From Lepidodermella squamata (Eukaryota; Animalia; Gastrotricha): 64,000 bases of DNA. The notes below the pieces were generated by a model. That model saw nothing but the letters and a program-made list of their open reading frames with translations. It ran no database searches and was not told where the DNA came from. The stretch covers positions 1,674,001 to 1,738,000 of the forward strand of contig JBLDXI010000019.1 of the NCBI GenBank assembly GCA_047495785.1, in the 5' to 3' direction. The position numbers and the translations under genes are program-made. Positions 1,871 to 57,339 of the stretch are shown here, in pieces (positions within the stretch are counted from its first letter, which is position 1; each line of letters begins with the position of its first letter).

Positions 1871-1978
1871 TTTAAATAGTTTTCAACATGAGACGCTTTA
1901 TGCACCTACTCGAAGAATAATAATAATCATATCAAACCGGATTATATGGTTTATTCGGCCACTTTTGCGATTTTCAAA

Positions 1979-4405
1979 ATGCGGGGGGAGATTCTCATCG
2001 TTTTAGTTGCTATTTTTCTACCTGGTAGCTTACAGATCGAAGACAGGACAATTCTAATCCCTGGACTGATTCTTTTCGACGAAAGAGGCAACGTCAGCTA
2101 TAAGACATGCCTAGCTACTCGAAAGGTGGTAATCGACCATATCAATGCGAGGGATGACATTCTTCCGGGCTACAAACTCGAAATCGAATCAATCGATGAA
2201 GGCTCTGGTGCTTTCACAGCAGCTCGGAGTTTCTTCAATTTCTACAACAGATGGGAATCGGCTCATCTCAACGGATCCTTAACCATTTCTCCTGTAGTCA
2301 TGGGCCCGACTGTCTCCTGCCAATCTGTCGCTCATTCGCTGAAAATGATGAGTATGATCGAAATTACTGAGCAATGCAACGGGCCTTATCTAACTGGCCT
2401 GAAACAGAAGTATCTGACGAATATGTATCGAATGCTACAACCATCCCAGCTATCTGTAGTCGCAGTTCTTCTATTCCAGTTGCAAATGAAGTGGAAGCAA
2501 ACTGGAGTTATTTCAAACTACGCGAATCCTAACGACTACACCAATGCTCAAACTTTACAGCGGCTGTCAGTCGCGAATGGCATTGATGTTATCTACTCTG
2601 GGCTGGATGATGGGGAAATCACTGAAACAACACTGATTACCATGAAGTCAAGCGGGGCGAGGATTTTTAGTATGATAACATCATTTGTCCCGGCTTGTAT
2701 CAAGTTACTTTGTAGAACTCATCAATATGGAATGAGATCACCTCAATACGTTTTCATCCTCCTATTCAGTTGCTACTTCCCACCCGATAGTTCGCAATTG
2801 ATGCTGCCAGAAGGTTGCACTCGTCAAATGATCAATGAGCAATTGAAAACAACCATTTGGGCTGGTCTTTATCGAGGATCAATGGAAACTGCTATGAGCA
2901 CTTCTTTCGGCTATCAATCTTCCTGGTTCCAGGAGCAAGTTGCCAAAGAACTGAACTATGCCCCGACATCGGATGGGGATAATCTACCGATATGCCACGA
3001 CGTTGCTATGGCAACAGCTTTAACCCTGGACAGAGCTGATAAAACGTTGAAAAGCTATCACAATTCTTCGCTAACTAATTTCAGCTCAAATCCAACACTT
3101 GTTTCTGCGGTGATCAACCAAGCTGCGAGGCAGATGGATTTCATGGGGCTGAGAATAGGTCGTGTTCAGTACTCGCGTGATATCGAGGTTATCAACGACC
3201 GGATGTTGATAGGCCAATGGCATAGAAACAGTCTAAGGTTTCTGTTCCGTGCTCAGCGGAGAGATAGCGAAACAACACTTAACGTGTCAGCTTACGATCT
3301 AATAACGATTAATTTCACCATCTGGCCAACAAAACATAACAGTCCGCCGAGTGATTTGTCGAAAGTTTCTGAAATCCTAGAGCTGCCAAATGAAACTGTG
3401 CAAGGGACACTGTCTTCTATCGCAATCCTAGGAATAATCGTCACTTCAATTCAATTTGCGACCTACGTGAAGAAGACCCGGAAACCCGGCTGCAGCTTAG
3501 CCTTCAAGAGCTTGGCGTTCAAATTTCCACTCCTAGCCGGGAGTATCGTATTGAATTTGAACAGCATGTTAACTGTACTTCTACCTGCATCGTATCCGCT
3601 ACTTGAGTGTAACTTGAGATTCATCCTAACAACCATTGGCTTCGTGTTATTTGACGCCGTGATCATAACTCAAGCAACAATCATTTCTCATCTTACAACA
3701 CCGATTCAAAAGCTGAAGAAGAAGAGAAATCCATCAAAAAGCTTGAAGTCGATACGAGTTAACAAGGCGGAGGTGATGTCAACTGACAGGGTGGACCCTG
3801 CGAAATTAAAAGAGCTGAAATTCGACATAACTCGCCGAATTTGCCTAATCACAATTATAAGCTTCACCATTTTGGTAGTATGGCTGTCAGGGGTTGATAG
3901 AGTCTCAGCCGAATTCTTACCTTCACCCATTCACTATAGCGAAATTGAGGATACCTATTGCAGGAGAATCAACTTGTACTGCACCTCCAAGTACTTACAA
4001 AATTGGCTGGAGGCTCTGCTAGCAATTCACGGCTGTTATCTCATCTCATCTATGTTCATCGCGAATCGTAATAATAGGAACAAGGAGAAGATGACCCCCG
4101 AGTTCAAACTTGTCCGTTTGGCCTCGATTAACTCAACGGTTCTTTCGGCTTGTATCGTTCTTGTGATGTTAATTTTTTTGACTTCGACCAGTTCGCCGGG
4201 TTGGATGCTGAATGTTGTTCTTGGTATGGGTTGTACAATTTACTCGACGGTAACGTGTGGCGTCCTGTTTTATTGCCCTTCGAACAACACGGTCGCCAAT
4301 CCTCCGTCGCGGCTTTTCGGAGTCGTGTCTTCGGAAAATGCGACACGGGTGGCGACCCCGAAACATCAGCTCAAGACGAAAGATGTTGTGAAGGTTGTCG
4401 GGTAG
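1979..4405 (+). CDS. Class C GPCR, GABA-B-receptor-like (signal peptide, Venus flytrap, 7TM), intronless
   Basis: INARDDILPGYKLE N-terminal motif is typical of GABA-B/ANF-receptor flytraps, followed by 7 TM helices. ATG 1979 chosen because it matches the paralog start context ttttcaaaATG. Confidence 0.85.
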   Translation: MRGEILIVLVAIFLPGSLQIEDRTILIPGLILFDERGNVSYKTCLATRKVVIDHINARDDILPGYKLEIESIDEGSGAFTAARSFFNFYNRWESAHLNGSLTISPVVMGPTVSCQSVAHSLKMMSMIEITEQCNGPYLTGLKQKYLTNMYRMLQPSQLSVVAVLLFQLQMKWKQTGVISNYANPNDYTNAQTLQRLSVANGIDVIYSGLDDGEITETTLITMKSSGARIFSMITSFVPACIKLLCRTHQYGMRSPQYVFILLFSCYFPPDSSQLMLPEGCTRQMINEQLKTTIWAGLYRGSMETAMSTSFGYQSSWFQEQVAKELNYAPTSDGDNLPICHDVAMATALTLDRADKTLKSYHNSSLTNFSSNPTLVSAVINQAARQMDFMGLRIGRVQYSRDIEVINDRMLIGQWHRNSLRFLFRAQRRDSETTLNVSAYDLITINFTIWPTKHNSPPSDLSKVSEILELPNETVQGTLSSIAILGIIVTSIQFATYVKKTRKPGCSLAFKSLAFKFPLLAGSIVLNLNSMLTVLLPASYPLLECNLRFILTTIGFVLFDAVIITQATIISHLTTPIQKLKKKRNPSKSLKSIRVNKAEVMSTDRVDPAKLKELKFDITRRICLITIISFTILVVWLSGVDRVSAEFLPSPIHYSEIEDTYCRRINLYCTSKYLQNWLEALLAIHGCYLISSMFIANRNNRNKEKMTPEFKLVRLASINSTVLSACIVLVMLIFLTSTSSPGWMLNVVLGMGCTIYSTVTCGVLFYCPSNNTVANPPSRLFGVVSSENATRVATPKHQLKTKDVVKVVG

Positions 4406-6623: not shown

Positions 6624-6859
6624 AGGTTTATGGATACTAGACTCAACCTTTAATGCCTTTCAACCGTTTGATAGCATGGATTTAATAAAACTAATTTGCT
6701 TGGTTCTTATTTGGATTTCTCGCAACCTAGAACGAGCGTTTCAGCCGAAGCCAACACAATGTCCATCCACCTACGCCTCTCCTCAGTATGTAACCTGATT
6801 GAGAAGTTTTTAATTAGCTTTATTTACGAAATTTCAATGAATTATTACATCAAAATTTC

Positions 6860-6968
6860 AAAGATCGGCCTAAGCCGTCGTGGATGCCCGGACGCATCCC
6901 TGCCTAGGCAAGCCGAAACCGTCCCAAGGTCGCCTTGTCTGCGGCCTTGAACTGCAGCCCAGACACAA
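6860..6968 (-). pseudogene. Truncated copy (3' half only) of the unknown ncRNA family, type A
   Basis: Has the 3' double hairpin and the GAACTGC.GCCCAGAC segment shared with the 14327 copy. Lacks the 5' stem and the promoter boxes. Confidence 0.65.
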
Positions 6969-7580: not shown

Positions 7581-7847
7581 AAAAAAGCGGCCCAAGCCGC
7601 CGTGGATGCGCCCGGTCGCATCCCGAGCACAGCTCCTCATTTTCATAATAAATTCACAAAAAAACTTACCGCTGCGGATGGGGCCTAGCTGCTTTATTGA
7701 ATGAAAATTCGAAAATGCACGAAGTTGGCTAACAGTAACAGCTATGGTACACCTTAGACAGGTGACCAACAGGCAAGCAGCACGCAGGCTGGGCAGTGGC
7801 AGAGATAGACAATAACGCACACACAGACGCTTCGGCCTCTCCGCAGC
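7581..7847 (-). ncRNA. Unknown structured ncRNA, type B copy 1 (about 265 nt)
   Basis: 5' stem GCTGCGGA/TCCGCAGC, 3' GGATG..CATCC and GCGGC-TTGG-GCCGC hairpins, T6 tail. Boxes at -25..-30 (7872) and -70 (7917). Confidence 0.7.
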
Positions 7848-8176
7848 AACAAAAGGCTATCCTAAAAGCTTGACTACGTCTTTTTAGGAACCTCGGCTCT
7901 TTATGCCAATTCGTCTGCATATTCGCAAGTATTAATTGATGCATGGAAAGCGCTGACTGCCACGTGTTTAATAAAGGAAAATGCTGGCTCAATGCGTTAC
8001 GTTCGCTCAATGACCTCAGCTTAACGTCGTCGAGGTCAAACACAACAATTATTAGGCCTCTTTGATTTTAAGAGCCGAACTCAATTCAACCCTTCGAGGT
8101 GATTTTCCAGCGAAAATCGTTCTTATCAATTAATAAGTCGGTTTTTTTTTAAACGAAAATGCGGACACTGATTGCA

Positions 8177-8200: not shown

Positions 8201-8666
8201 ATAAAATGTGTTAAAACCTGAGAGGATCGCTATGTTCCCTGTCCCAATTATTAGTTCATTAGTCCATTCTTATTATTCTAGCTAGCGCTCGTGACAGTAA
8301 TATCACGTGACGCACTTCATTATAACTCATCTAATTTGGCGTCCTCTTGGCTCTTGGCTATATAAGCCCTAAATAATAACAATAAAGATATCAGTTGATC
8401 TGCTTTACTGAACTGCCTTTTGTATTACTCATTATTCAGTCTAATTGCTGTTATTAGTTTGCCCCCGAACCAGGTCAGGGATATCAACCCTTCATTGGCG
8501 CTGAGACCCGGGACATCTTACGACCTCACTACTTTTATTTTAATTTCACCTCTCGTTACGGTATTCTTTGACCTTCGATTCTGAAATATTTTGAAATTAA
8601 GGTCGAAATTTTCGAAAATCCTCGGAACCTTCACCTATTTCAACTGAAATTTGCTTTTAGCGTTTC

Positions 8667-8841
8667 AAAGTCCGGCCTAAGCCGTCGTGGATGTCCGGTC
8701 GCATCCCGGTCCGCTAGTGTCCTGCACCGAGCGTTTACACACCTACAGTCCAGGCCGCTTCCCATGTGAAGCTTGCCACCTGAACATAGGGACTGCGGAG
8801 GGGGCTTCAATCGCAAGCCAAAGTTCCGGCCACCCCGCAGC
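8667..8841 (-). ncRNA. Unknown structured ncRNA, type D copy 1 (about 175 nt)
   Basis: Same 5' stem and 3' hairpins, with G-U pairs that work only on the minus strand. Boxes at 8866 and 8911 (ATTTGCAT). Confidence 0.72.
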
Positions 8842-9065
8842 AAATTTTAGTAAATCAAAATTCCTGGCTGCAATTTATTGTGAAAAACTTCAGTTCTAGA
8901 CAAACAATTTGCATATTATTTTTTAAAAATCAGTTTTTTTATTGATGGTTGAAGCAGCTAAAAGTCACTTGACGCAGACACGTGCACTCAATTAAATATG
9001 ATGCCAAGAACAATTTTATCTTGATTGAAATAGCCAATTATTTATTGACATTGAAATTTGGTAGA

Positions 9066-9632: not shown

Positions 9633-9704
9633 TTCCCTGACCGGGAATCGAACCCGGGCCGCCGCGGTGAAAGCGCGGAATCCTAACCACTAGACCATCA
9701 GGGA
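9633..9704 (-). tRNA. tRNA-Glu(TTC)
   Basis: TCCCTGATGGTCTAGTGGTTAGGATTCCGCGCTTTCACCGCGGCGGCCCGGGTTCGATTCCCGGTCAGGGAA forms a full cloverleaf with A and B boxes and a T4 terminator. Confidence 0.95.
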
Positions 9705-9839: not shown

Positions 9840-9911
9840 GGGCCCGCTCGGGAATTGAGCCCGAGACCGCTCGGGCCCGAAGCGAGAATCATACCCCTAG
9901 ACCAACGGACC
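9840..9911 (-). tRNA. tRNA-Pro(CGG), divergent or possible pseudogene
   Basis: GGTCCGTTGGTCTAGGGGTATGATTCTCGCTTCGGGCCCGAG...; T54 is C in the B box and there is a C-C mismatch at the base of the anticodon stem. Confidence 0.75.
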
Positions 9912-10983: not shown

Positions 10984-13422
10984 ATGCAGGAAAGGATATT
11001 CGTCGCCTTGTCGCTATTAGCGAGTTTTCTACCAAGTGGTCTGCAGATTAAAGACAAGAAAATTCTCATCCCCGGACTGATTCTTTTCGACGAAAGAGGT
11101 AACGTCAGCTATAAGACATGCCTAGCTACTCGAAAGGTGGTAATCGACCATATCATTGCGAGGGATGACATTCTCCCGGGCTACAAACTCGAAATCGAAT
11201 CAATCGACGAAGGTGCTGGAGCTTTTACAGCAGCTCGGAGTTTCTTCAATTTCTACAACAAATGGGAATCGGCTCATCTCAACGGATCCTTAACCATTTC
11301 TCCTGTAGTCATGGGCCCGACTGTCTCCTGCCAATCTGTCGCTCATTCGCTGAAAATGATGAGTATGATCGAAATTACTGAGCAATGCAACGGGCCTTAT
11401 CTAACTGGCCTGAAACAGAAGTATCTGACGAATATGTATCGAATGCTACAACCATCCCAGCTATCTGTAGTCGCAGTTCTTCTATTCCAGTTGCAAATGA
11501 AGTGGAAGCAAACTGGAGTTATTTCAAACTACGCGAATCCTAACGACTACACCAATGCTCAAACCTTACAGCGGCTGTCAGTCGCGAATGGCATTGATGT
11601 TATCTACTCTGGGCTGGATGATGGGGAAATCACTGACATGACCCTGATTACCATGAAGGCAAGCGGGGCGAGGATTTTTAGTATGACATCATCATTTCCC
11701 CCGGCTTGTATCAAGCTACTTTGTAGAACTCATCAATATGGAATGAGATCACCTCAATACGTCTTCATCCTCCTTTTCAGTTGCTACTTCCCACCCGATA
11801 GTTCGCAACTGTCGCTACCAGAAGGTTGCACTCGTCAAATGATCAATGAACAATTAGCAACAACTATTTGGGTTGGTCTTTATCGCGGATCCATTGAAAC
11901 TGCTGTGAACACTTCATTCGGCTATCAATCTGCTTGGTTCCAGGATCAGGTTGCCAAGGAATTGAACTATGCCCCTACATCGGATGGAGATAATCTACCG
12001 ATATGCCACGACGTTGCTATGGCAACCGTTTTAACCCTGGACAAAGCTGACAAAACGTTGAAAAGCTATCACAATTCTTCGCTAACTGATTTCAGCTCAA
12101 ATCCAACACTTGTTTCTGCGGTGATCAATCAAGCTGCGAGGCAGATAGATTTCATGGGGCTGAGAATAGGACGTGTTCAGTACTCGCGTGATATCGAGGT
12201 TATCAACGACCGGATGTTGATAGGCCAATGGCATAGAAACAGTCTAAGATTTCTGTTTCGTGCCCAGCGAAGAGATAGCGAAACAACACTTAACGTGTCA
12301 GCTTACGACCTTGTGCTGATTAATTCCACCATCTGGCCAACGAAACATGGCGGTCCGCCGAGTGATCTGTCAAATGTTTCCGATATCGTAGAGCTGCCTA
12401 GCAAAATCGCGCAAGGGACATTGTCTTTTTTCGCTATCCTGGGAATAATTGCGAATTCATTTCAATTCGCGTTTTACGTGAAAAAGAGTCAGAAGCCCGA
12501 CTGCGGTTTAGTCTTTAAGAGCTACGTGTTCAAACTCCCACTCCTCGCCGGGAGTGTTATATTGAATTTGAGCAGCCTGTTAACCGTGCTTCTGGCTGCA
12601 TCGTATCCACTACTTGAATGCAACTTGAGATTCATCTTAACAACCATTGGCTTCGTGATATTCGACGCCGTGATCATGACTCAAGCAACAATCCTTTCTC
12701 ATCTGACAACACCGATTCAAAAGCTAAAAAAGAAGAATAGAAAGCCATCAAAAAGCTTAAAGTCTATAAGAGTTAACAAGGCTGAAGTGCTGTCCGCTGA
12801 CAGGGTGGACCCTGCGAAATTAGAAGATCTTAAATTCGACATAACCTGCCGAATTTTCCTAATCACAATTATAAGCTTCATCATTTTGGTAGTATGGCTG
12901 TCAGGGGTTGATAGAGTCTCAGCCGAATTCGTGCCATCGCCAATTCTGTATGACGAGCTTGAGGATACCTATTGCCGGAGCATCAACTTGTACTGCACCT
13001 CCAAGTACTTACAAAATTGGCTGGAGGCTCTGCTAGCAATTCACGGCTGTTATCTCATCGCATCTATATTCATCTCAAATCGAAACAATAGGAATAAGGA
13101 GAAGATGACCCCCGAGTTCAAACTTGTCCGTTTGGCCTCGATCAACTCGACTGTTCTTTCGGCTTGCATGGTTCTTGTGATGCTGATTTTTCTGACATCG
13201 ACCAGTTCACCGGGCTGGATGTTGAATGTTGTTCTTGGTGTGAGTTGCACAATTTACTCGACGGTAACGTGTGGCGTCCTGTTTTATTGTCCTTCAAACA
13301 ACACGGTCGCCAGTCCTCCGTCTCGGTTTTTCGGAGTCGTAACTTCGGAAAATGCGACACGGGCCGCGACCACGAAATATCAGCACTATAAGACGACGGA
13401 GTTGGTAACGGTTGGCGGGTAG
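10984..13422 (+). CDS. Class C GPCR, GABA-B-receptor-like; close paralog of 1979-4405
   Basis: 812-aa intronless ORF, collinear with and highly similar to the 1979 copy. Confidence 0.85.
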   Translation: MQERIFVALSLLASFLPSGLQIKDKKILIPGLILFDERGNVSYKTCLATRKVVIDHIIARDDILPGYKLEIESIDEGAGAFTAARSFFNFYNKWESAHLNGSLTISPVVMGPTVSCQSVAHSLKMMSMIEITEQCNGPYLTGLKQKYLTNMYRMLQPSQLSVVAVLLFQLQMKWKQTGVISNYANPNDYTNAQTLQRLSVANGIDVIYSGLDDGEITDMTLITMKASGARIFSMTSSFPPACIKLLCRTHQYGMRSPQYVFILLFSCYFPPDSSQLSLPEGCTRQMINEQLATTIWVGLYRGSIETAVNTSFGYQSAWFQDQVAKELNYAPTSDGDNLPICHDVAMATVLTLDKADKTLKSYHNSSLTDFSSNPTLVSAVINQAARQIDFMGLRIGRVQYSRDIEVINDRMLIGQWHRNSLRFLFRAQRRDSETTLNVSAYDLVLINSTIWPTKHGGPPSDLSNVSDIVELPSKIAQGTLSFFAILGIIANSFQFAFYVKKSQKPDCGLVFKSYVFKLPLLAGSVILNLSSLLTVLLAASYPLLECNLRFILTTIGFVIFDAVIMTQATILSHLTTPIQKLKKKNRKPSKSLKSIRVNKAEVLSADRVDPAKLEDLKFDITCRIFLITIISFIILVVWLSGVDRVSAEFVPSPILYDELEDTYCRSINLYCTSKYLQNWLEALLAIHGCYLIASIFISNRNNRNKEKMTPEFKLVRLASINSTVLSACMVLVMLIFLTSTSSPGWMLNVVLGVSCTIYSTVTCGVLFYCPSNNTVASPPSRFFGVVTSENATRAATTKYQHYKTTELVTVGG

Positions 13423-14326
13423 ATGTGCGATTAAACCAAGGGGGATTGTGTGTATTAAATCATAATTGTAAATTTATTTCTGATAATAAAAATGAAACAA
13501 AATTTCATCTGTATTTTCCGAATGAGTCCCGCTTCTGTTCATTTACCTGGGTCAAAACAGCTAATAACGCCTAATAGAAACACGTCGCCCAAATTTTAAA
13601 TCAACCAAATTTGCAGCCCAAAATCAACGTTCGTGCAGCACTTTGTCAAAATTTGCGCAGCGCATTTTGACCAAACGCAGCACAAATTACGCAACCTGCA
13701 GCCGGATTTTAATGGATGCAGCGCGATTCAATTATTGCGCCGCGCAAAGACTTGACACGTCAAGACTTGAAATTATTTCCCGAATTTTTCAAAAATGCGA
13801 TTTTTTTTGGTTGCGTGAATCATAATTATTGCAGATGGCGCCGTGATTCGTCGGGCGATTTTTTGCAAAAAAACTCGAAAAAGCAATAATGCGGAAACGC
13901 GCTTCTTTCAGAATTTTTCCTACCAAAAACCGTTCCCTGACGGAATTTCCGGTTTTACAAGCGCTGAGTTGAAGGTGAGATCTACATGCCTTATTTCTTT
14001 TTTATCTATCTATAGTTGCGACTAATACCAAAATTATTATTATTTAATAAAACGAACTCAATCGTTTCTAACTTGAATTTCTAGCTACCTCGAAATAACA
14101 AGTTCTACGAAGGTTTTCCATCAATTTATGCTACCTTATATTTCCTGAAATATTCAGAAAATTCCACATTCCACAGCAGCCTGATAGAAAATCGCGTCGC
14201 ACCAACAAATCAGCTTTTTGATACCCTGTGAAGATGGTCAGCAGAAAAATTTGGCTGATAATTACAGCCACTAACAAAGGGTCGGAAAGATGAGCAAGAT
14301 TACGGCTGAAATTATATCAAATTTGC

Positions 14327-14500
14327 AAAGATCGGCCAAAGCCGCCGTGGATGCCCGGTCTCATCCCTGTCCCCGACTATGACCTGTCCTTATGACCTGT
14401 CCTCGAACTGCTGCCCAGACAAATTTTACGCCCGAAGCCGCGACTGCGGAGGGGGCCTGCTTTAATCTCTCGCAAGCCATCAACCCGGCCTCTCCGCAGC
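14327..14500 (-). ncRNA. Unknown structured ncRNA, type A copy 2 (about 174 nt)
   Basis: GCTGCGGAG/CTCCGCAGT stem, GGCTTGC/GCAGGCC stem and 3' double hairpin. Boxes at 14525 and 14570. Confidence 0.72.
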
Positions 14501-15378
14501 AAATGACCTCAAACCGGAAATCTTGCCTACGTGTTTTCGTGAAACTCGGCCTTCTCAGCTATTTTGTTAGCATATTCGTAATGGAACACACGCAGTTTTA
14601 ATTGCTGCCGTGAAAACGCCGACTGCCTACTGTGTAATGGAGGGGGTTAATTTCGAAGCCATCATTATAAGTTAACTTTTCCTATTATGTCGACTTCATC
14701 GCCTGGAAAAAAAGTATTATTTTCGAAAATTTTCGTCAACTTAAGTCGGCTTTATCTCGCAAACATAAATGTACTACGGCCGATTTTATCGCTTCATAGT
14801 CGACTTGGTCGACGGCTGATTTTTGTTCGAAATAGAGCGTTTTGACCTCAAAAACTCTTGCTGACCTAATTGTATAAGAATCATAGCAATAAAAGAAGCT
14901 GGTAAAAAGTAGGTCACAGCTAATGATGATCAATATGAAACTGGCGCCTGCTGTTTTTTCCAGTTAAAGCCAGCAAAGTCGATATTTCGGCTTTATTATA
15001 AAGGCGGCTAGGTATTTTAAAAGCTGTCATTAGTTGAATCGAATTTGTGCAAAATGCAAAATGAGTGTTGGCTCAATTTCCGCGAAACAGGCGTTCCAAA
15101 AGCTGAATGCAAAAACTCATCACTGCTATATTCATCACTGCTGAGAAGCCTATCTTACAGGCGACCAGGTGGGTGGTGCCAGGATTTTTTGTAGATTTTC
15201 TATATGATCGCAAGAAAGTTGAAAGGGAGAATAATTCAATTCAAGCTAAAGTATAAGGCGTAACGGTATCGTTAACGGAACTAATTTTTGCAAATAGCTG
15301 CAAATAGCTAGCTGGCAAACGAGATTTGTATCCGCTTTCCTGCCATCTGATTTCAAGTTTGATTTATTCAACATTCAG

Positions 15379-15639
15379 AAAAGCGGCCCAAGCCGCCGTG
15401 GATGCGTCCGGTCGCATCCCGAGCACAGCTCCACAATTTCATAATAAACTCACAAAAAACTTACCGCTGCGGATGGGGCCTAGCTGCTTTATTGAGTTAA
15501 AATTCGAAAATGATACAATATTCAGCGAGACACCTTAGACAGGTGAGCAACAGGCAAGCAGCACGCAGGCTGGGCAAAGGCAGAGAGATAAACAATAACG
15601 CACACACAGACATAACCATCGCTACGGCCTCTCCGCAGC
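15379..15639 (-). ncRNA. Unknown structured ncRNA, type B copy 2 (about 260 nt)
   Basis: Paralog of 7581-7847. Boxes at 15664 and 15709. Confidence 0.7.
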
Positions 15640-16413
15640 AACAGCAGGCTATCCTAAAATCTTGGCTACGTCTTTTTAGGAATTCCGGTCCTTTCAGCCA
15701 TTTCGTTTGCATATTCGCTATTAAACACACAGTATTTAATTGCAGCATACGGGAGACCCCGGCTGCCACGTGTGTAATAAAGGAAAATGCGGCTCAATGC
15801 GTTCCGTCGAAATGACCTCAACTCATCTCAACGTCTTCTAGGTCAAACACATCAAATACTGCCTATTTTATTTTAATGCCGCACACCAATATTCTGTTTG
15901 GCCGAGCAACTCAATTCAACTCTTCGGGGTGATGTTCCAACGAAAAGACCAGTAGGTAGAGGAAATCGTTCTTATCAATTTATAAGCCTGTTTTTGAAAA
16001 GTGAAAAAATTTCATCCATAAATCGAATTTTAAGGACATGGAAATCCTGATTTCCTGCGATTTATTGTGATTTACCGATTTAGATAATTTCATTTAATTT
16101 ATTTAGTCTCGTAAAAATTGATTTTGATTGATTGAAGGAGGTCCATGATTTAAGCCATAAAATAAAATAAAATCCAAAGCAGTGGTAACTGTAGCTTATT
16201 GTGGACTGGGCAAATTTGGAATTTACAGCTAAGGTGGAAACTGTTAGCTCTTCCAACACAACTTGATCAGTGACCAGACGTGGATTTTCTTGGAAAACCT
16301 GACCCAATATGCGGTAATCTACAGTCCACAAATGAGATTCTCAACGTTCCATTCGAAACTTTCAAGCAGAACGAGCTTGTCAGCCAATTTCAAATATGTT
16401 TTTGTTTTCTGCT

Positions 16414-16565
16414 AAAAAGATCGGCTTTTGCCGTTGTGGATGTCCGGTACCATCCCGGCCCGCTGGTTAGTCACCGAGCGATAGTTGAAGTAGACCCCTG
16501 TGGGTGGATGCTACTGACTGCGGAGGGGACTTGCAAGCAAGCCGACAACCCGGCCGCTCCGCAGC
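16414..16565 (-). ncRNA. Unknown structured ncRNA, type C (about 152 nt)
   Basis: 5' stem, two middle hairpins, GGATG..CATCC, CGGC-AAAA-GCCG and a T5 tail. Boxes at 16590 and 16635 (ATTTGCAT). Confidence 0.75.
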
Positions 16566-17236
16566 AATTATAATACATCAAAAACCTCTCGCTACCTTTT
16601 ATTATGGATCGAAATAATTTCGGGTAATTAATTTGCATATTCAATACTATATTCACCAAGCCGTTGATGGCCAAACTCATAAAGCTTGATAACTATTCTA
16701 TATAAGAAAGTAATAACGCTAGTGATTGCCGTGATAATAGTGCGCTAATGTAGGGCAAGTGTTAACTAAGCGCTATGAGCAACACAGATAGGTCAGTTTC
16801 GGGTCAATCCGCCCTCAGAGCTCCAAATGAGTACTTTCCGAGCAGCGTGAGCTGATTTAAAACTATTTTACGCGTGACCCATTTTCATTCGATAGAGAAT
16901 TGTCTGAAGTTTATGTAGATATGCACCGCCACGATACTCGAAAACAGCCCATTGACATCACCGGTAATTTTTCGCTGCAGATCATATTGATATTTGATTA
17001 TGTTAAATTATGAAATTTTCGAAATTTGCAGGACAGCCAGGAATCATCTTGCCGGTTCAAATGGCTAAATTGTTTGAACAAAGGCTGATTTTTTTACCTT
17101 CGGAAAGCAAGTTTTATTGTAAGTTCCCTCTCGTTACGGTTCTTTGACCTTCGATTCTGAAATTGAAGTCGAAATTCGCGACTCTGGTGATCTGTCACCT
17201 AATTTTAACTGAAATTTAATTTGTTTTCAGCGTTTC

Positions 17237-17411
17237 AAAGTCCGGCCTAAGCCGTCGTGGATGTCCGGTCGCATCCCGGTCCGCTAGTGTCCTGCACCGA
17301 GCGTTTACACACCTACAGTCCAGGCCATTGAAGCTCGAAGCTTGCCACCTGAACAATAGGGACTGCGGAGGGGGCTTCAATCGCAAGCCAAAGTTCCGGC
17401 CACCCCGCAGC
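17237..17411 (-). ncRNA. Unknown structured ncRNA, type D copy 2 (about 175 nt)
   Basis: Near-identical to 8667-8841. Boxes at 17436 and 17481. Confidence 0.72.
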
Positions 17412-17425
17412 AAATTTTCGCAAAT

Positions 17426-17488
17426 CAAAATTCCTGGCTGCAATTTATTGTGAGAAACTTCAATTCTGGACAAACCATTTGCATATTC
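17426..17488 (-). promoter_or_regulatory. Bipartite snRNA-type external promoter of the ncRNA family (representative copy)
   Basis: On the plus strand, NNCTRC lies 25-30 bp and GCATATT begins exactly 70 bp from the inferred +1 in all six full copies. Confidence 0.7.
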
Positions 17489-43157: not shown

Positions 43158-44420
43158 GAGTTTTGCAGCCGCAAGGCTTTGAATCCTTACTGTACTATAC
43201 ATCCAGTAATAACGGTCTAGTTATTTTGCTAAATTGATGATGTTGTTGTATATCTGACCTTGTGCAGGTGATTTTGTATTTTTTCGGGAAAATACCGGTA
43301 AATATAATATTATTATGAGGTCGCAGGGTTTCGAACCTCTTATGCACTTTAGTAATAATTTGAATATGCGCCACGTGGCTGGTCACGAATCTGGCATTCA
43401 TTACAGATTTTTATATGTGGAAGACAATATAATTTAATATAATTAATGCCAAAAATGATTTCAAGGGTAAACGCAGGGTTCCAAAGCTTTACCGGGATGT
43501 TTAATTTTATCGCATAATTATATTATTTTTAATACCCATTGACTCTTTTTATAATTTTTCAATATTTGAGATGTACATATTTTCTAAAATTGAATAAAAA
43601 TAGGGAGAGTGTTGCTAAATCTGGAAACTTCCGGAGCATGTCATGAATCGGCATTTTCAGGCCGGGGACAATTGAATTTTACAGCCTTCACGCATGAGTG
43701 AAGCACGCAATCAGAGTGAATTGCTGCAACGAGTATTCACTGCCAATATTAGAACGGACGGACGGCTGAAATTTTTTTCACATTCTAGTCCCGATGGATG
43801 CGAACGTTGCACATTCGGGAACAGATATTTCAATCAGCTCGCGGATATGTAAAACACGCTCAAATCGACCTTCAAAGTTGGAATAATGGTGTATTTGCCC
43901 TGTGATCAGTAGCGTGTAATCTTTGGGTCTTTTCTGGTCTTTTCTATATAGCTTCAACCTGACTTTAACCTGGATTGTTAACTATCCCAGAATCTGGGCA
44001 GAATTTAGGAAAATTGCGGATTATTAGTTACGTCAAAAATAATTATGCTTAGCAATGAACTTTTTATGCCTTAAATCAAGTAACAGACGTCTTCGACTTA
44101 CGTGCAGATTATCCGAAATTATGATTAAAAAATCCCGGATATATCTTCATTTTCTTTCGTCACAGAGCATCCTCAGACATTTGGATCCCCATATGTCCCC
44201 AAGTTTACCGACATTAATTTTGAAAAATCAAGAACTCTTTTGTCTTATGGCTTTTTCTGCGGGAATCTAATTCGGGTATTTCCGGTTTTATTTCACGGAG
44301 GATGAACAACGTAAGAAAGAGAAATGAGAAAAAAACATCAATAGCTATTATTCAAATTTAGCTTTTACCAATTTTAGTAAATTCTGAGGATTTTTTTCTG
44401 ATTTTTAGGAGAAGTAAAAT

Positions 44421-56578: not shown

Positions 56579-57339
56579 ACATCAACTCATGACTCTTTGT
56601 TATTGCTGTATAGCTCAGTGATATCCACCATCAACCGTCATCACTGCCAACAACACTGCCAAATTTCAAGTTCCAACATCGAAACTGAATAAAAAATTGA
56701 ATATTTTCGAGACAGCCTTCGTATGTTCAGTTATCTTGTTGATCAGCTCGACAAGTTAGGAGGTCAATACGAGAGTAAATTAGAATACCGCCGCCTCACA
56801 CCTCGATATAAGAATGGCAGAAATGTAGAATTTGTTCAATTTTTTAATTGAAATTGAAATATGCACCTAAATTTTAGCAGCATGCAGCATGGATTTTGCT
56901 ATCTCTGGTGATTTCATTCAGAATTAGATACTGTTTGAAACCTCTTTTACTTATTCAAAAAATTTCAAGCTTCAAGGCAAGCGATAACTAATTCTACCCA
57001 AGAAATAAATTCATGAGGATTTTGATAAAGCCGTGAATATGCAAATGAGGCATTTAAAATAATCCATATACCTTCAACTATTTTATAGAATGAAGGTAAA
57101 ATAATGTAAAAATTACAGAAATTTTCACAGCCATCCGAAATCGGCGCTACCTTCAAGTTCTGATAAGTTCTAATTTTCATACTTTTTTTCTGATTTTCTG
57201 TACCTGAAAAACAAGATTTTCTGATTTTGTCCAAAATAAGAGCACTCACAAAAAAAACAAAGGAAAATTTATTTATTTTGCACCTCAAATTCGAATAGGT
57301 ATGAAACTTGAAAGATCACAACTTTATCAACATCCTCAA

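Follow-up and report, generated by a model that had tools for sequence, protein, structure and literature searches.

In a 64,000-nt stretch of the genome of the gastrotrich Lepidodermella squamata (assembly GCA_047495785.1, contig JBLDXI010000019.1, positions 1,674,001 to 1,738,000; hereafter the window, in whose coordinates all positions without a contig prefix are given), six copies of a structured sequence family lie on the minus strand, each preceded at exactly 70 bp by a conserved box. This distal element matches that of the U small nuclear RNA (snRNA) genes of the same species. The best reading is that a known promoter type would here drive a new RNA family, specific to the lineage and with its eight loci on a single contig; we think it quite probable, from sequence features, that the full copies are small-RNA genes in their own right and belong to the snRNA class.

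A distal box shared with U snRNA genes

The full copies are 150-270 nt long, and every one of them begins with GCTGCGG and has at its end two hairpins, GGGAUG..CAUCC and CGGC-N4-GCCG, both conserved, and then CUUU. The 9-mer CCGCAGCAA, expected 0.43 times in the window, occurs exactly six times (7841, 8835, 14494, 15633, 16559 and 17405) and all six occurrences mark copy starts. The G of minus-strand GCTGCGG falls at 7847, 8841, 14500, 15639, 16565 and 17411, the +1 of each gene having been placed at the point where homology between copies begins. By predicted start there are four types: A (7847 and 15639), B (8841 and 17411), C (14500) and D (16565); the type letters A-E differ from the lettering of an earlier note on this DNA. 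Since the pairs 7847/15639 and 8841/17411 are part of a segmental duplication (81-85% identity) that also holds class C G-protein-coupled receptor (GPCR) paralogues, the copies provide four independent comparisons, not six. The predicted non-coding RNA (ncRNA) genes and the two incomplete or diverged members are as follows.

7581..7847, minus strand: ncRNA gene A, ~267 nt; a 5′ stem closing off a long insert, then two 3′ hairpins and a T6 tail; internal T7 at nt 184
8666..8841, minus strand: ncRNA gene B, ~176 nt; without any T4 run
14326..14500, minus strand: ncRNA gene C, ~175 nt; without a recognisable 3′ box (3′-box score -0.3)
15377..15639, minus strand: ncRNA gene A2, ~263 nt; duplicate of A
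16415..16565, minus strand: ncRNA gene D, ~151 nt
17236..17411, minus strand: ncRNA gene B2, ~176 nt; duplicate of B
6859..6906, minus strand: promoter-less partial copy (the seventh); type-C 3′ module only, without the GCTGCGG start and without a proximal sequence element (PSE)
C19:2109465-2109613, minus strand: copy E (the eighth, diverged), ~420 kb away on the same contig and strand as the window copies

The 100-bp regions upstream of the six full copies align without gaps and, with the start as column 101, AATATGC is invariant at columns 25-31. Its C (the G of plus-strand GCATATT) stands at 7917, 8911, 14570, 15709, 16635 and 17481, 70 bp from the G of GCTGCGG in six of six copies, and a matrix scan independently returned the same coordinates. 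The earlier note had claimed this 70-bp spacing at identical coordinates, together with a perfect octamer in three copies, and both claims hold: the octamer ATTTGCAT (minus strand ATGCAAAT) precedes the starts at 8841, 16565 and 17411. Its further claim that a box stands before every full copy also fits, the boxless seventh copy (6859-6906) being a 3′ module only. The six PSE-like distal boxes are:

7913..7924, minus strand: gene A, GAATATGCAGAC; C at 7917, i.e. -70; matrix score 16.7
8907..8918, minus strand: gene B, TAATATGCAAAT; C at 8911, i.e. -70; matrix score 9.7, the lowest of the six
14566..14577, minus strand: gene C, GAATATGCTAAC; C at 14570; matrix score 14.5
15705..15716, minus strand: gene A2, GAATATGCAAAC; C at 15709; matrix score 17.4
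16631..16642, minus strand: gene D, GAATATGCAAAT; C at 16635; matrix score 20.7, the second-best match in the window
17477..17488, minus strand: gene B2, GAATATGCAAAT; C at 17481; matrix score 15.8

The matrix behind these scores (22 columns, 17.4 bits) was trained only on the upstream regions of U1, U2, U4, U5 and U6 genes, and five of the six family boxes are within its seven best matches over both strands of the window (128 kb). The box of gene B is the weakest because it has T in place of G before AATATGC.

The U genes used for comparison were located by Rfam models in the 121-Mb assembly (151 contigs), which holds ~32 U6, 42 U1, 47 U2, 15 U4 and 48 U5 genes. Upstream regions were read for 54 of them, 46 non-redundant, and ATATGCAAAT, allowing for up to two mismatches, is present in all 46 apart from three divergent U2 copies; the consensus of their distal box is TGTGMATATGCAAATGA and its strict 13-mer form TGMATATGCAAAT. 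The box C lies at -69 in U1 (10 of 11), at -68 or -69 in U4, mostly at -68 to -71 in U2, at -70 or -71 in U6 and at -66 to -69 in U5, so that nearly all snRNA genes sampled have it at -68 to -71, as compared with -70 in the six family copies and -69 in copy E. An RNase MRP gene (C1:1876590-1876863, minus strand; sampled site L085:151-424; Rfam 86 bits), met by chance among sites of the box, carries the same distal box and has TTTATATG in the register where U6 has TATTTAAG; it is an independent example of the promoter in its RNA polymerase III (Pol III) form. Comparison with the species' own U-gene promoters was the test by which the earlier note proposed that its reading might fall, and the outcome supports that reading, with U1, U2, U4, U5, U6 and MRP sharing the sequence and the position of the box. 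The protein bound at -70 is presumably SNAPc; what is shown of this is the presence of a SNAPC3 (SNAP50) homologue (C17:1930110-1930709, minus strand; 315-aa open frame, E = 1e-48).

Whether the spacing is kept by selection or by descent alone was judged by comparing the box with its surroundings. Among the five gene types, ungapped identity amounts to 0.77 for the box itself and 0.41-0.44 from box to start, and it is 0.25 directly upstream of the box, which is random; the homology of the family therefore begins with the box. Alignment of the duplicates shows an 80-bp promoter interval free of gap columns at 82-90% identity, as against 57-77% identity and 12-33% gap columns in the flanks; for A2 and A the figures are 82% without gaps, and 57-62% with many gaps in the flanks. 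A genome-wide search for further members, made with a covariance model of the 3′ module and a pattern of the 5′ end, yielded one locus beyond the seven window copies, copy E, and the family thus comprises eight loci, all on one contig and one strand. Three further matches to the 5′ pattern, without box and without 3′ module, were set aside, their number equalling the control count. Despite its strong divergence, copy E has the best box of the family (score 21.4), and its proximal GAGCCCCGG matches the U2 proximal box in exact register. It also shows two compensatory changes: a G-C pair of the 5′ stem has become A-U, and a U-A pair of the first 3′ hairpin has become C-G. With copy E included, all 100 pair cells remain paired, a result equalled by 18 of 500 shuffles. 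Conservation of the box, the indel-free promoter interval and these features of copy E together favour a maintained gene with a maintained promoter.

The second element, the 3′ ends and the predicted polymerase

Nearer the start lies a second element, which the earlier note had described as an A run followed by an NNCTRC box at 25-30 bp in six copies. It is real: G-30, A-28 and G-27 are invariant in the six copies (GYAG on the minus strand, CTRC on the plus strand), as are the A residues at -37, -35 and -34 before GYAG, and A run and GYAG box together span -38 to -25.

7872..7885, minus strand: proximal box of gene A, A run and GACGTAGTC, -38 to -25; Pol II-proximal score 1.4 (top 1.8% of background)
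8866..8879, minus strand: proximal box of gene B, AATAAATTGCAGCC; score 3.6 (top 0.75% of background)
14525..14538, minus strand: proximal box of gene C, GAAAACACGTAGGC; score -3.9 in register, 4.2 with 2 nt slack
15664..15677, minus strand: proximal box of gene A2, from the alignment and the proximal matrix
16590..16603, minus strand: proximal box of gene D, ATAAAAGGTAGCGA; score -1.4
17436..17449, minus strand: proximal box of gene B2, identical to that of B

The snRNA genes of RNA polymerase II (Pol II) share a degenerate proximal box, CAGAAnGGGGnC (9.2 bits), 34-45 bp after the box C, and in this register the family has its A run and CGTAGCC, with an A-rich stretch and then G..G.C 35-45 bp after that C. 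U6 and RNase MRP have a TATA box (TATTTA/TTTATA, at about -30) 41-48 bp after the box C, where the family reads TAGTCAAG or CAGCCAGG. No U6-type TATA was found in the family, the U6-TATA matrix giving -9.2 to 2.9 in the six copies and -11.7 in copy E versus 9-17 in U6, in agreement with the earlier note's observation that TATA is absent at -30. A non-TATA, A-rich/GYAG box holds the place of the U6/MRP TATA, which makes Pol II the likelier enzyme.

For the 3′ ends, a matrix obtained by expectation-maximisation on the downstream flanks of U1, U2, U4 and U5 genes gave a species 3′ box with consensus AAAACTAAAAACAAA (13 bits), starting 0-22 nt past the annotated ends of these genes. The 95th percentile of its background is 5.2, and three family genes exceed it, copy E being borderline at 5.1.

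8650..8664, minus strand: 3′ box of gene B, AACGCTAAAAGCAAA, 8 nt past the last hairpin; score 8.6 (1.6% of background windows as high)
16395..16409, minus strand: 3′ box of gene D, GAAAACAAAAACATA; score 14.4 (0.1% of background windows as high)
17220..17234, minus strand: 3′ box of gene B2, AACGCTGAAAACAAA; score 9.9 (0.9% of background windows as high)

In most of the U2 genes sampled (L023-L034), GAAACAUGGGGG pairs with the terminal CCCCCU in an additional hairpin that lies past the Rfam 3′ end and before the 3′ box, which suggests a longer mature or precursor U2 3′ end.

A type-3 Pol III gene would carry a run of at least four T at its end and none inside, and this pattern is not what the family shows: B, B2, C and E are without T4 anywhere (T3 only, at the end), and A has an internal T7 in addition to two T4. 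The earlier note had favoured Pol II over Pol III, and the absence of TATA, the T runs, the 3′ boxes of B and D and the register of the proximal box lend support to that choice; we regard transcription by Pol II as likely. The distal box at -70 would then presumably recruit the SNAPc complex, the A-rich/GYAG box at -38 to -25 would take the place of TATA as second element, and the start site would be the G of GCUGCGG or a position no more than 1-2 nt from it. An snRNA-type 3′ box just past the last hairpin would set the 3′ end in types B and D, and perhaps in E. In the predicted product, an RNA of 150-270 nt, the 5′ closing stem and the two 3′ hairpins are conserved, the core varies, and the tail is short and U-rich.

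Alternatives, wider use of the box and nature of the RNA

A number of points weigh against a Pol II gene family of the snRNA class. We infer the transcription of the family loci from their sequence, and this itself counts among them. The Pol II proximal matrix gives the family only -3.9 to 3.6 versus a training median of 10.7; scores in the top 1-10% of background make the likeness more one of position than of sequence. No significant 3′ box was found after A, A2 and C (scores ~0), all copies end in a terminator-like hairpin-CUUU(U), and the predicted G start with a spacing of 70 is that of U6 (G start, 70-71), the sampled Pol II snRNAs starting with A and having the box at 68-69, except for a tandem U5 repeat that starts with T. 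The distal box contains the octamer ATGCAAAT, and few of 100 listed sites of its strict 13-mer adjoin snRNA genes found by Rfam. The box is thus present far beyond the known snRNA genes and not exclusive to them, which makes the box alone a weaker proof of an snRNA-type gene. Lastly, a metagenome scan for relatives in other species, made with the 3′ module, gave ten matches, all in G+C-rich bacterial coding DNA, and neither an orthologue nor an environmental relative among them.

Several of these points suit a gene with the same distal box but of the type-3, U6-like Pol III class, the proximal box being a weak TATA and the U run a terminator. Start and spacing are closer to U6 than to U1-U5, tails of T6 (A), T5 (D) and T4CT (A2) come directly after a G+C hairpin, the proximal boxes of B and D are A/T-rich (AATAAAT, ATAATAAAA), and A, A2 and C have no 3′ box. 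We nevertheless consider Pol III unlikely, given scores of -11.7 to 2.9 versus 9-17 in the U6/MRP TATA register, the lack of T4 in B, B2, C and E, the internal T7 and two T4 at which Pol III would stop early in A, and the significant snRNA-type 3′ boxes of B, B2 and D.

A second alternative takes the -70 box for an activator's octamer (POU-type) site, not one for SNAPc, in an otherwise ordinary Pol II promoter, and the loci for short units akin to long non-coding RNA genes; the resemblance to snRNA genes would then come from a transcription-factor motif in wide use. The octamer within the box would fit, as would TGCATATGCA, which is palindromic like known POU dimer sites, and so would the distribution of the strict 13-mer: 354 sites genome-wide vs 1 for the reversed control, and 40 sampled sites (L080-L119) of which only two adjoin RNAs recognised by Rfam, one a U2 fragment (L097) and the other RNase MRP (L085). 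Yet the box is the only element common to U1, U2, U4, U5, U6 and MRP at one fixed distance, which is the working definition of a PSE; the family holds exactly that distance without indels, and its products would be short and structured, some with 3′ boxes. An activator site of this kind is therefore improbable as an explanation. Least probable of all is that the copies are decaying duplicates of one old sequence whose boxes persist by descent with nothing transcribed: eight loci on one contig and strand, two pairs of plain segmental duplicates and a truncated copy are what it would lead one to see, but it is hardly compatible with between-type homology that is random just upstream of a 77% identical box, with an indel-free promoter interval in indel-rich flanks, or with a copy E that keeps its stems by compensatory changes and has the best box of all.

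At gathering score Rfam recognises none of the other 38 sampled box sites, and for ten loci taken as representatives a search at E up to 0.1 was empty as well. Fifteen of the 40 fall in five multi-copy groups of unfamiliar sequence, an example being L089/L093/L117 with a strong Pol II-type proximal box, and in about one third the box stands at the head of a dispersed AT-rich repeat (L083, L099, L100, L105, L119 and looser relatives). A copy of the dispersed AT-rich repeat (CCTCTCGTTAC...GAAATTT motifs) is also seen in the downstream flank of both B genes (8460-8660 and 17100-17230, plus strand), and this repeat comes after many box sites elsewhere in the genome. So wide a presence of the box raises the possibility of a large box-driven RNA repertoire. 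That the family is one example of wide snRNA-promoter use in the lineage, and possibly a new nuclear ribonucleoprotein (RNP) RNA with palindromic CCGG motifs, is a tentative idea on the doubtful side. If most box loci were transcribed, the gastrotrich would have a large lineage-specific repertoire of SNAPc-driven small RNAs, with the SNAPc-dependent Piwi-interacting RNA (piRNA) and SmY genes of nematodes as the nearest comparison in scale.

Two more places in the window match the PSE matrix well. The best match of all (24.4) opens a locus at 57031-57190 (plus strand), with GTGAATATGCAAATGAGGCA and its C at 57042, TATTTTATAG 38-46 bp further on and a T7 run (57183-57190) ~140 bp after the C; the locus is without an Rfam match at gathering score and may be a short Pol III type-3 small-RNA gene. 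A strong PSE-like match (16.5) at 43352-43373 (minus strand) has GCGCATATTCAAATTA, C at 43362 and an A/T-rich stretch before the start expected near 43293.

As to the RNA itself, all copies keep the 5′ stem, the second hairpin and two CCGG motifs, one in the internal loop adjoining the stem and one in the first 3′ hairpin's loop; we speculate that these two motifs may pair with each other or between molecules. Single-sequence folds are no more stable than shuffles (z of -0.7 and -1.5); the support for the structure lies in conservation and in the two compensatory pairs. Rfam returned no family at gathering score for the whole window, nor at E up to 10 for both clusters, where the matches to Xoo2 were discarded as a chance-level hairpin-plus-U resemblance. 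Known classes were rejected in turn: an Sm-class spliceosomal snRNA (no Sm pattern in the copies), a box C/D or H/ACA small nucleolar RNA (no C/D boxes or ACA 3 nt from the end common to the copies), telomerase RNA (the longest TTAGGG-template-like string is 6 nt, in one type only, at least 8 nt being required) and a spliced leader RNA (motifs absent). Copies of a short interspersed nuclear element or other retroposed copies were set aside in view of eight loci on one contig, homology reaching 77 bp upstream to the box, and U-rich tails. Our best guess is a nuclear RNP RNA specific to the lineage.

A mobile element was rejected as well, the neighbours being ordinary host genes (class C GPCR paralogues, trypsin/CUB, ankyrin). 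The GPCR paralogues are long single-exon frames of 819 and 812 aa at 1946-4405 and 10984-13422 (both plus strand), with ANF_receptor and, in one, also 7tm_3; they stand beside the two ncRNA clusters and seemingly belong to the same segmental duplication. Between the two clusters and on their strand are tRNA-Glu(UUC) (9633-9704, minus strand) and tRNA-Pro(CGG) (9840-9911, minus strand).

Read as a family of snRNA-class genes, unexplained repeats become probable genes whose promoter is defined and whose start is predicted; some have a defined end as well. The elements described, namely the distal box at about -70, the TATA of U6 and MRP, another proximal box in Pol II genes and the 3′ box AAAACTAAAAACAAA, apparently give, so far as we found in the literature, the first working account of such promoter elements for the snRNA genes of a gastrotrich, and they can be used to annotate the many other box-bearing loci of the genome and to choose promoters for expression tools. 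The paper on the L. squamata assembly leaves snRNA genes unmentioned (PMC11660948).

Comparison with known promoter systems

Insect snRNA promoters combine PSEA and PSEB for Pol II and PSEA and TATA for Pol III, bound by DmSNAPc (PMC1761439), and a PSE common to both polymerases with PSEB or TATA as second element is known from insects and Trichoplax (PMC1761439, PMC2655684). The L. squamata promoter is like that of insects in its bipartite build, its rigid spacing, a distal element common to both polymerase classes and lineage-specific in sequence, and a second element that is a non-TATA box in Pol II genes and TATA in U6 (PMC1761439). It is unlike it in the place of the distal core, about -77 to -65 here versus -61 to -41, and in the gap to the second box, ~28 bp here versus 8-12; the box sequence is unrelated and contains an octamer, and binding and polymerase choice are in this case predictions.

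Plant U-snRNA promoters have an upstream sequence element near -70 and a box near -30, and their spacing sets the polymerase. Here too one element lies near -70 and a second near -30 at fixed spacing; however, in plants a TATA is present in both classes and the spacing differs by one helical turn, whereas L. squamata has TATA in U6 and MRP and a different box at nearly the same place in Pol II genes. Vertebrate snRNA promoters have a PSE at -55 and, in a distal enhancer, the octamer ATGCAAAT, to which Oct-1 binds. An octamer associated with snRNA genes and a 3′ box just past the coding region are common to both systems, but the vertebrate octamer is ~200 bp upstream and separate from the PSE, and here it is within the only conserved distal box.

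Orphan genes of the snRNA class driven by SNAPc are the SmY RNAs and the SNAPc-dependent piRNA units of nematodes, and Trichoplax has PSE-bearing genes (snRNA-type) of its own, described elsewhere (PMC2655684). From such orphan genes the family differs in having no Sm site, SmY likeness or Rfam match, and in its larger and more variable RNA (150-270 nt). With the nematode units and the Trichoplax genes it would share the essential arrangement, a lineage-restricted small-RNA family on an snRNA promoter, in clustered copies.

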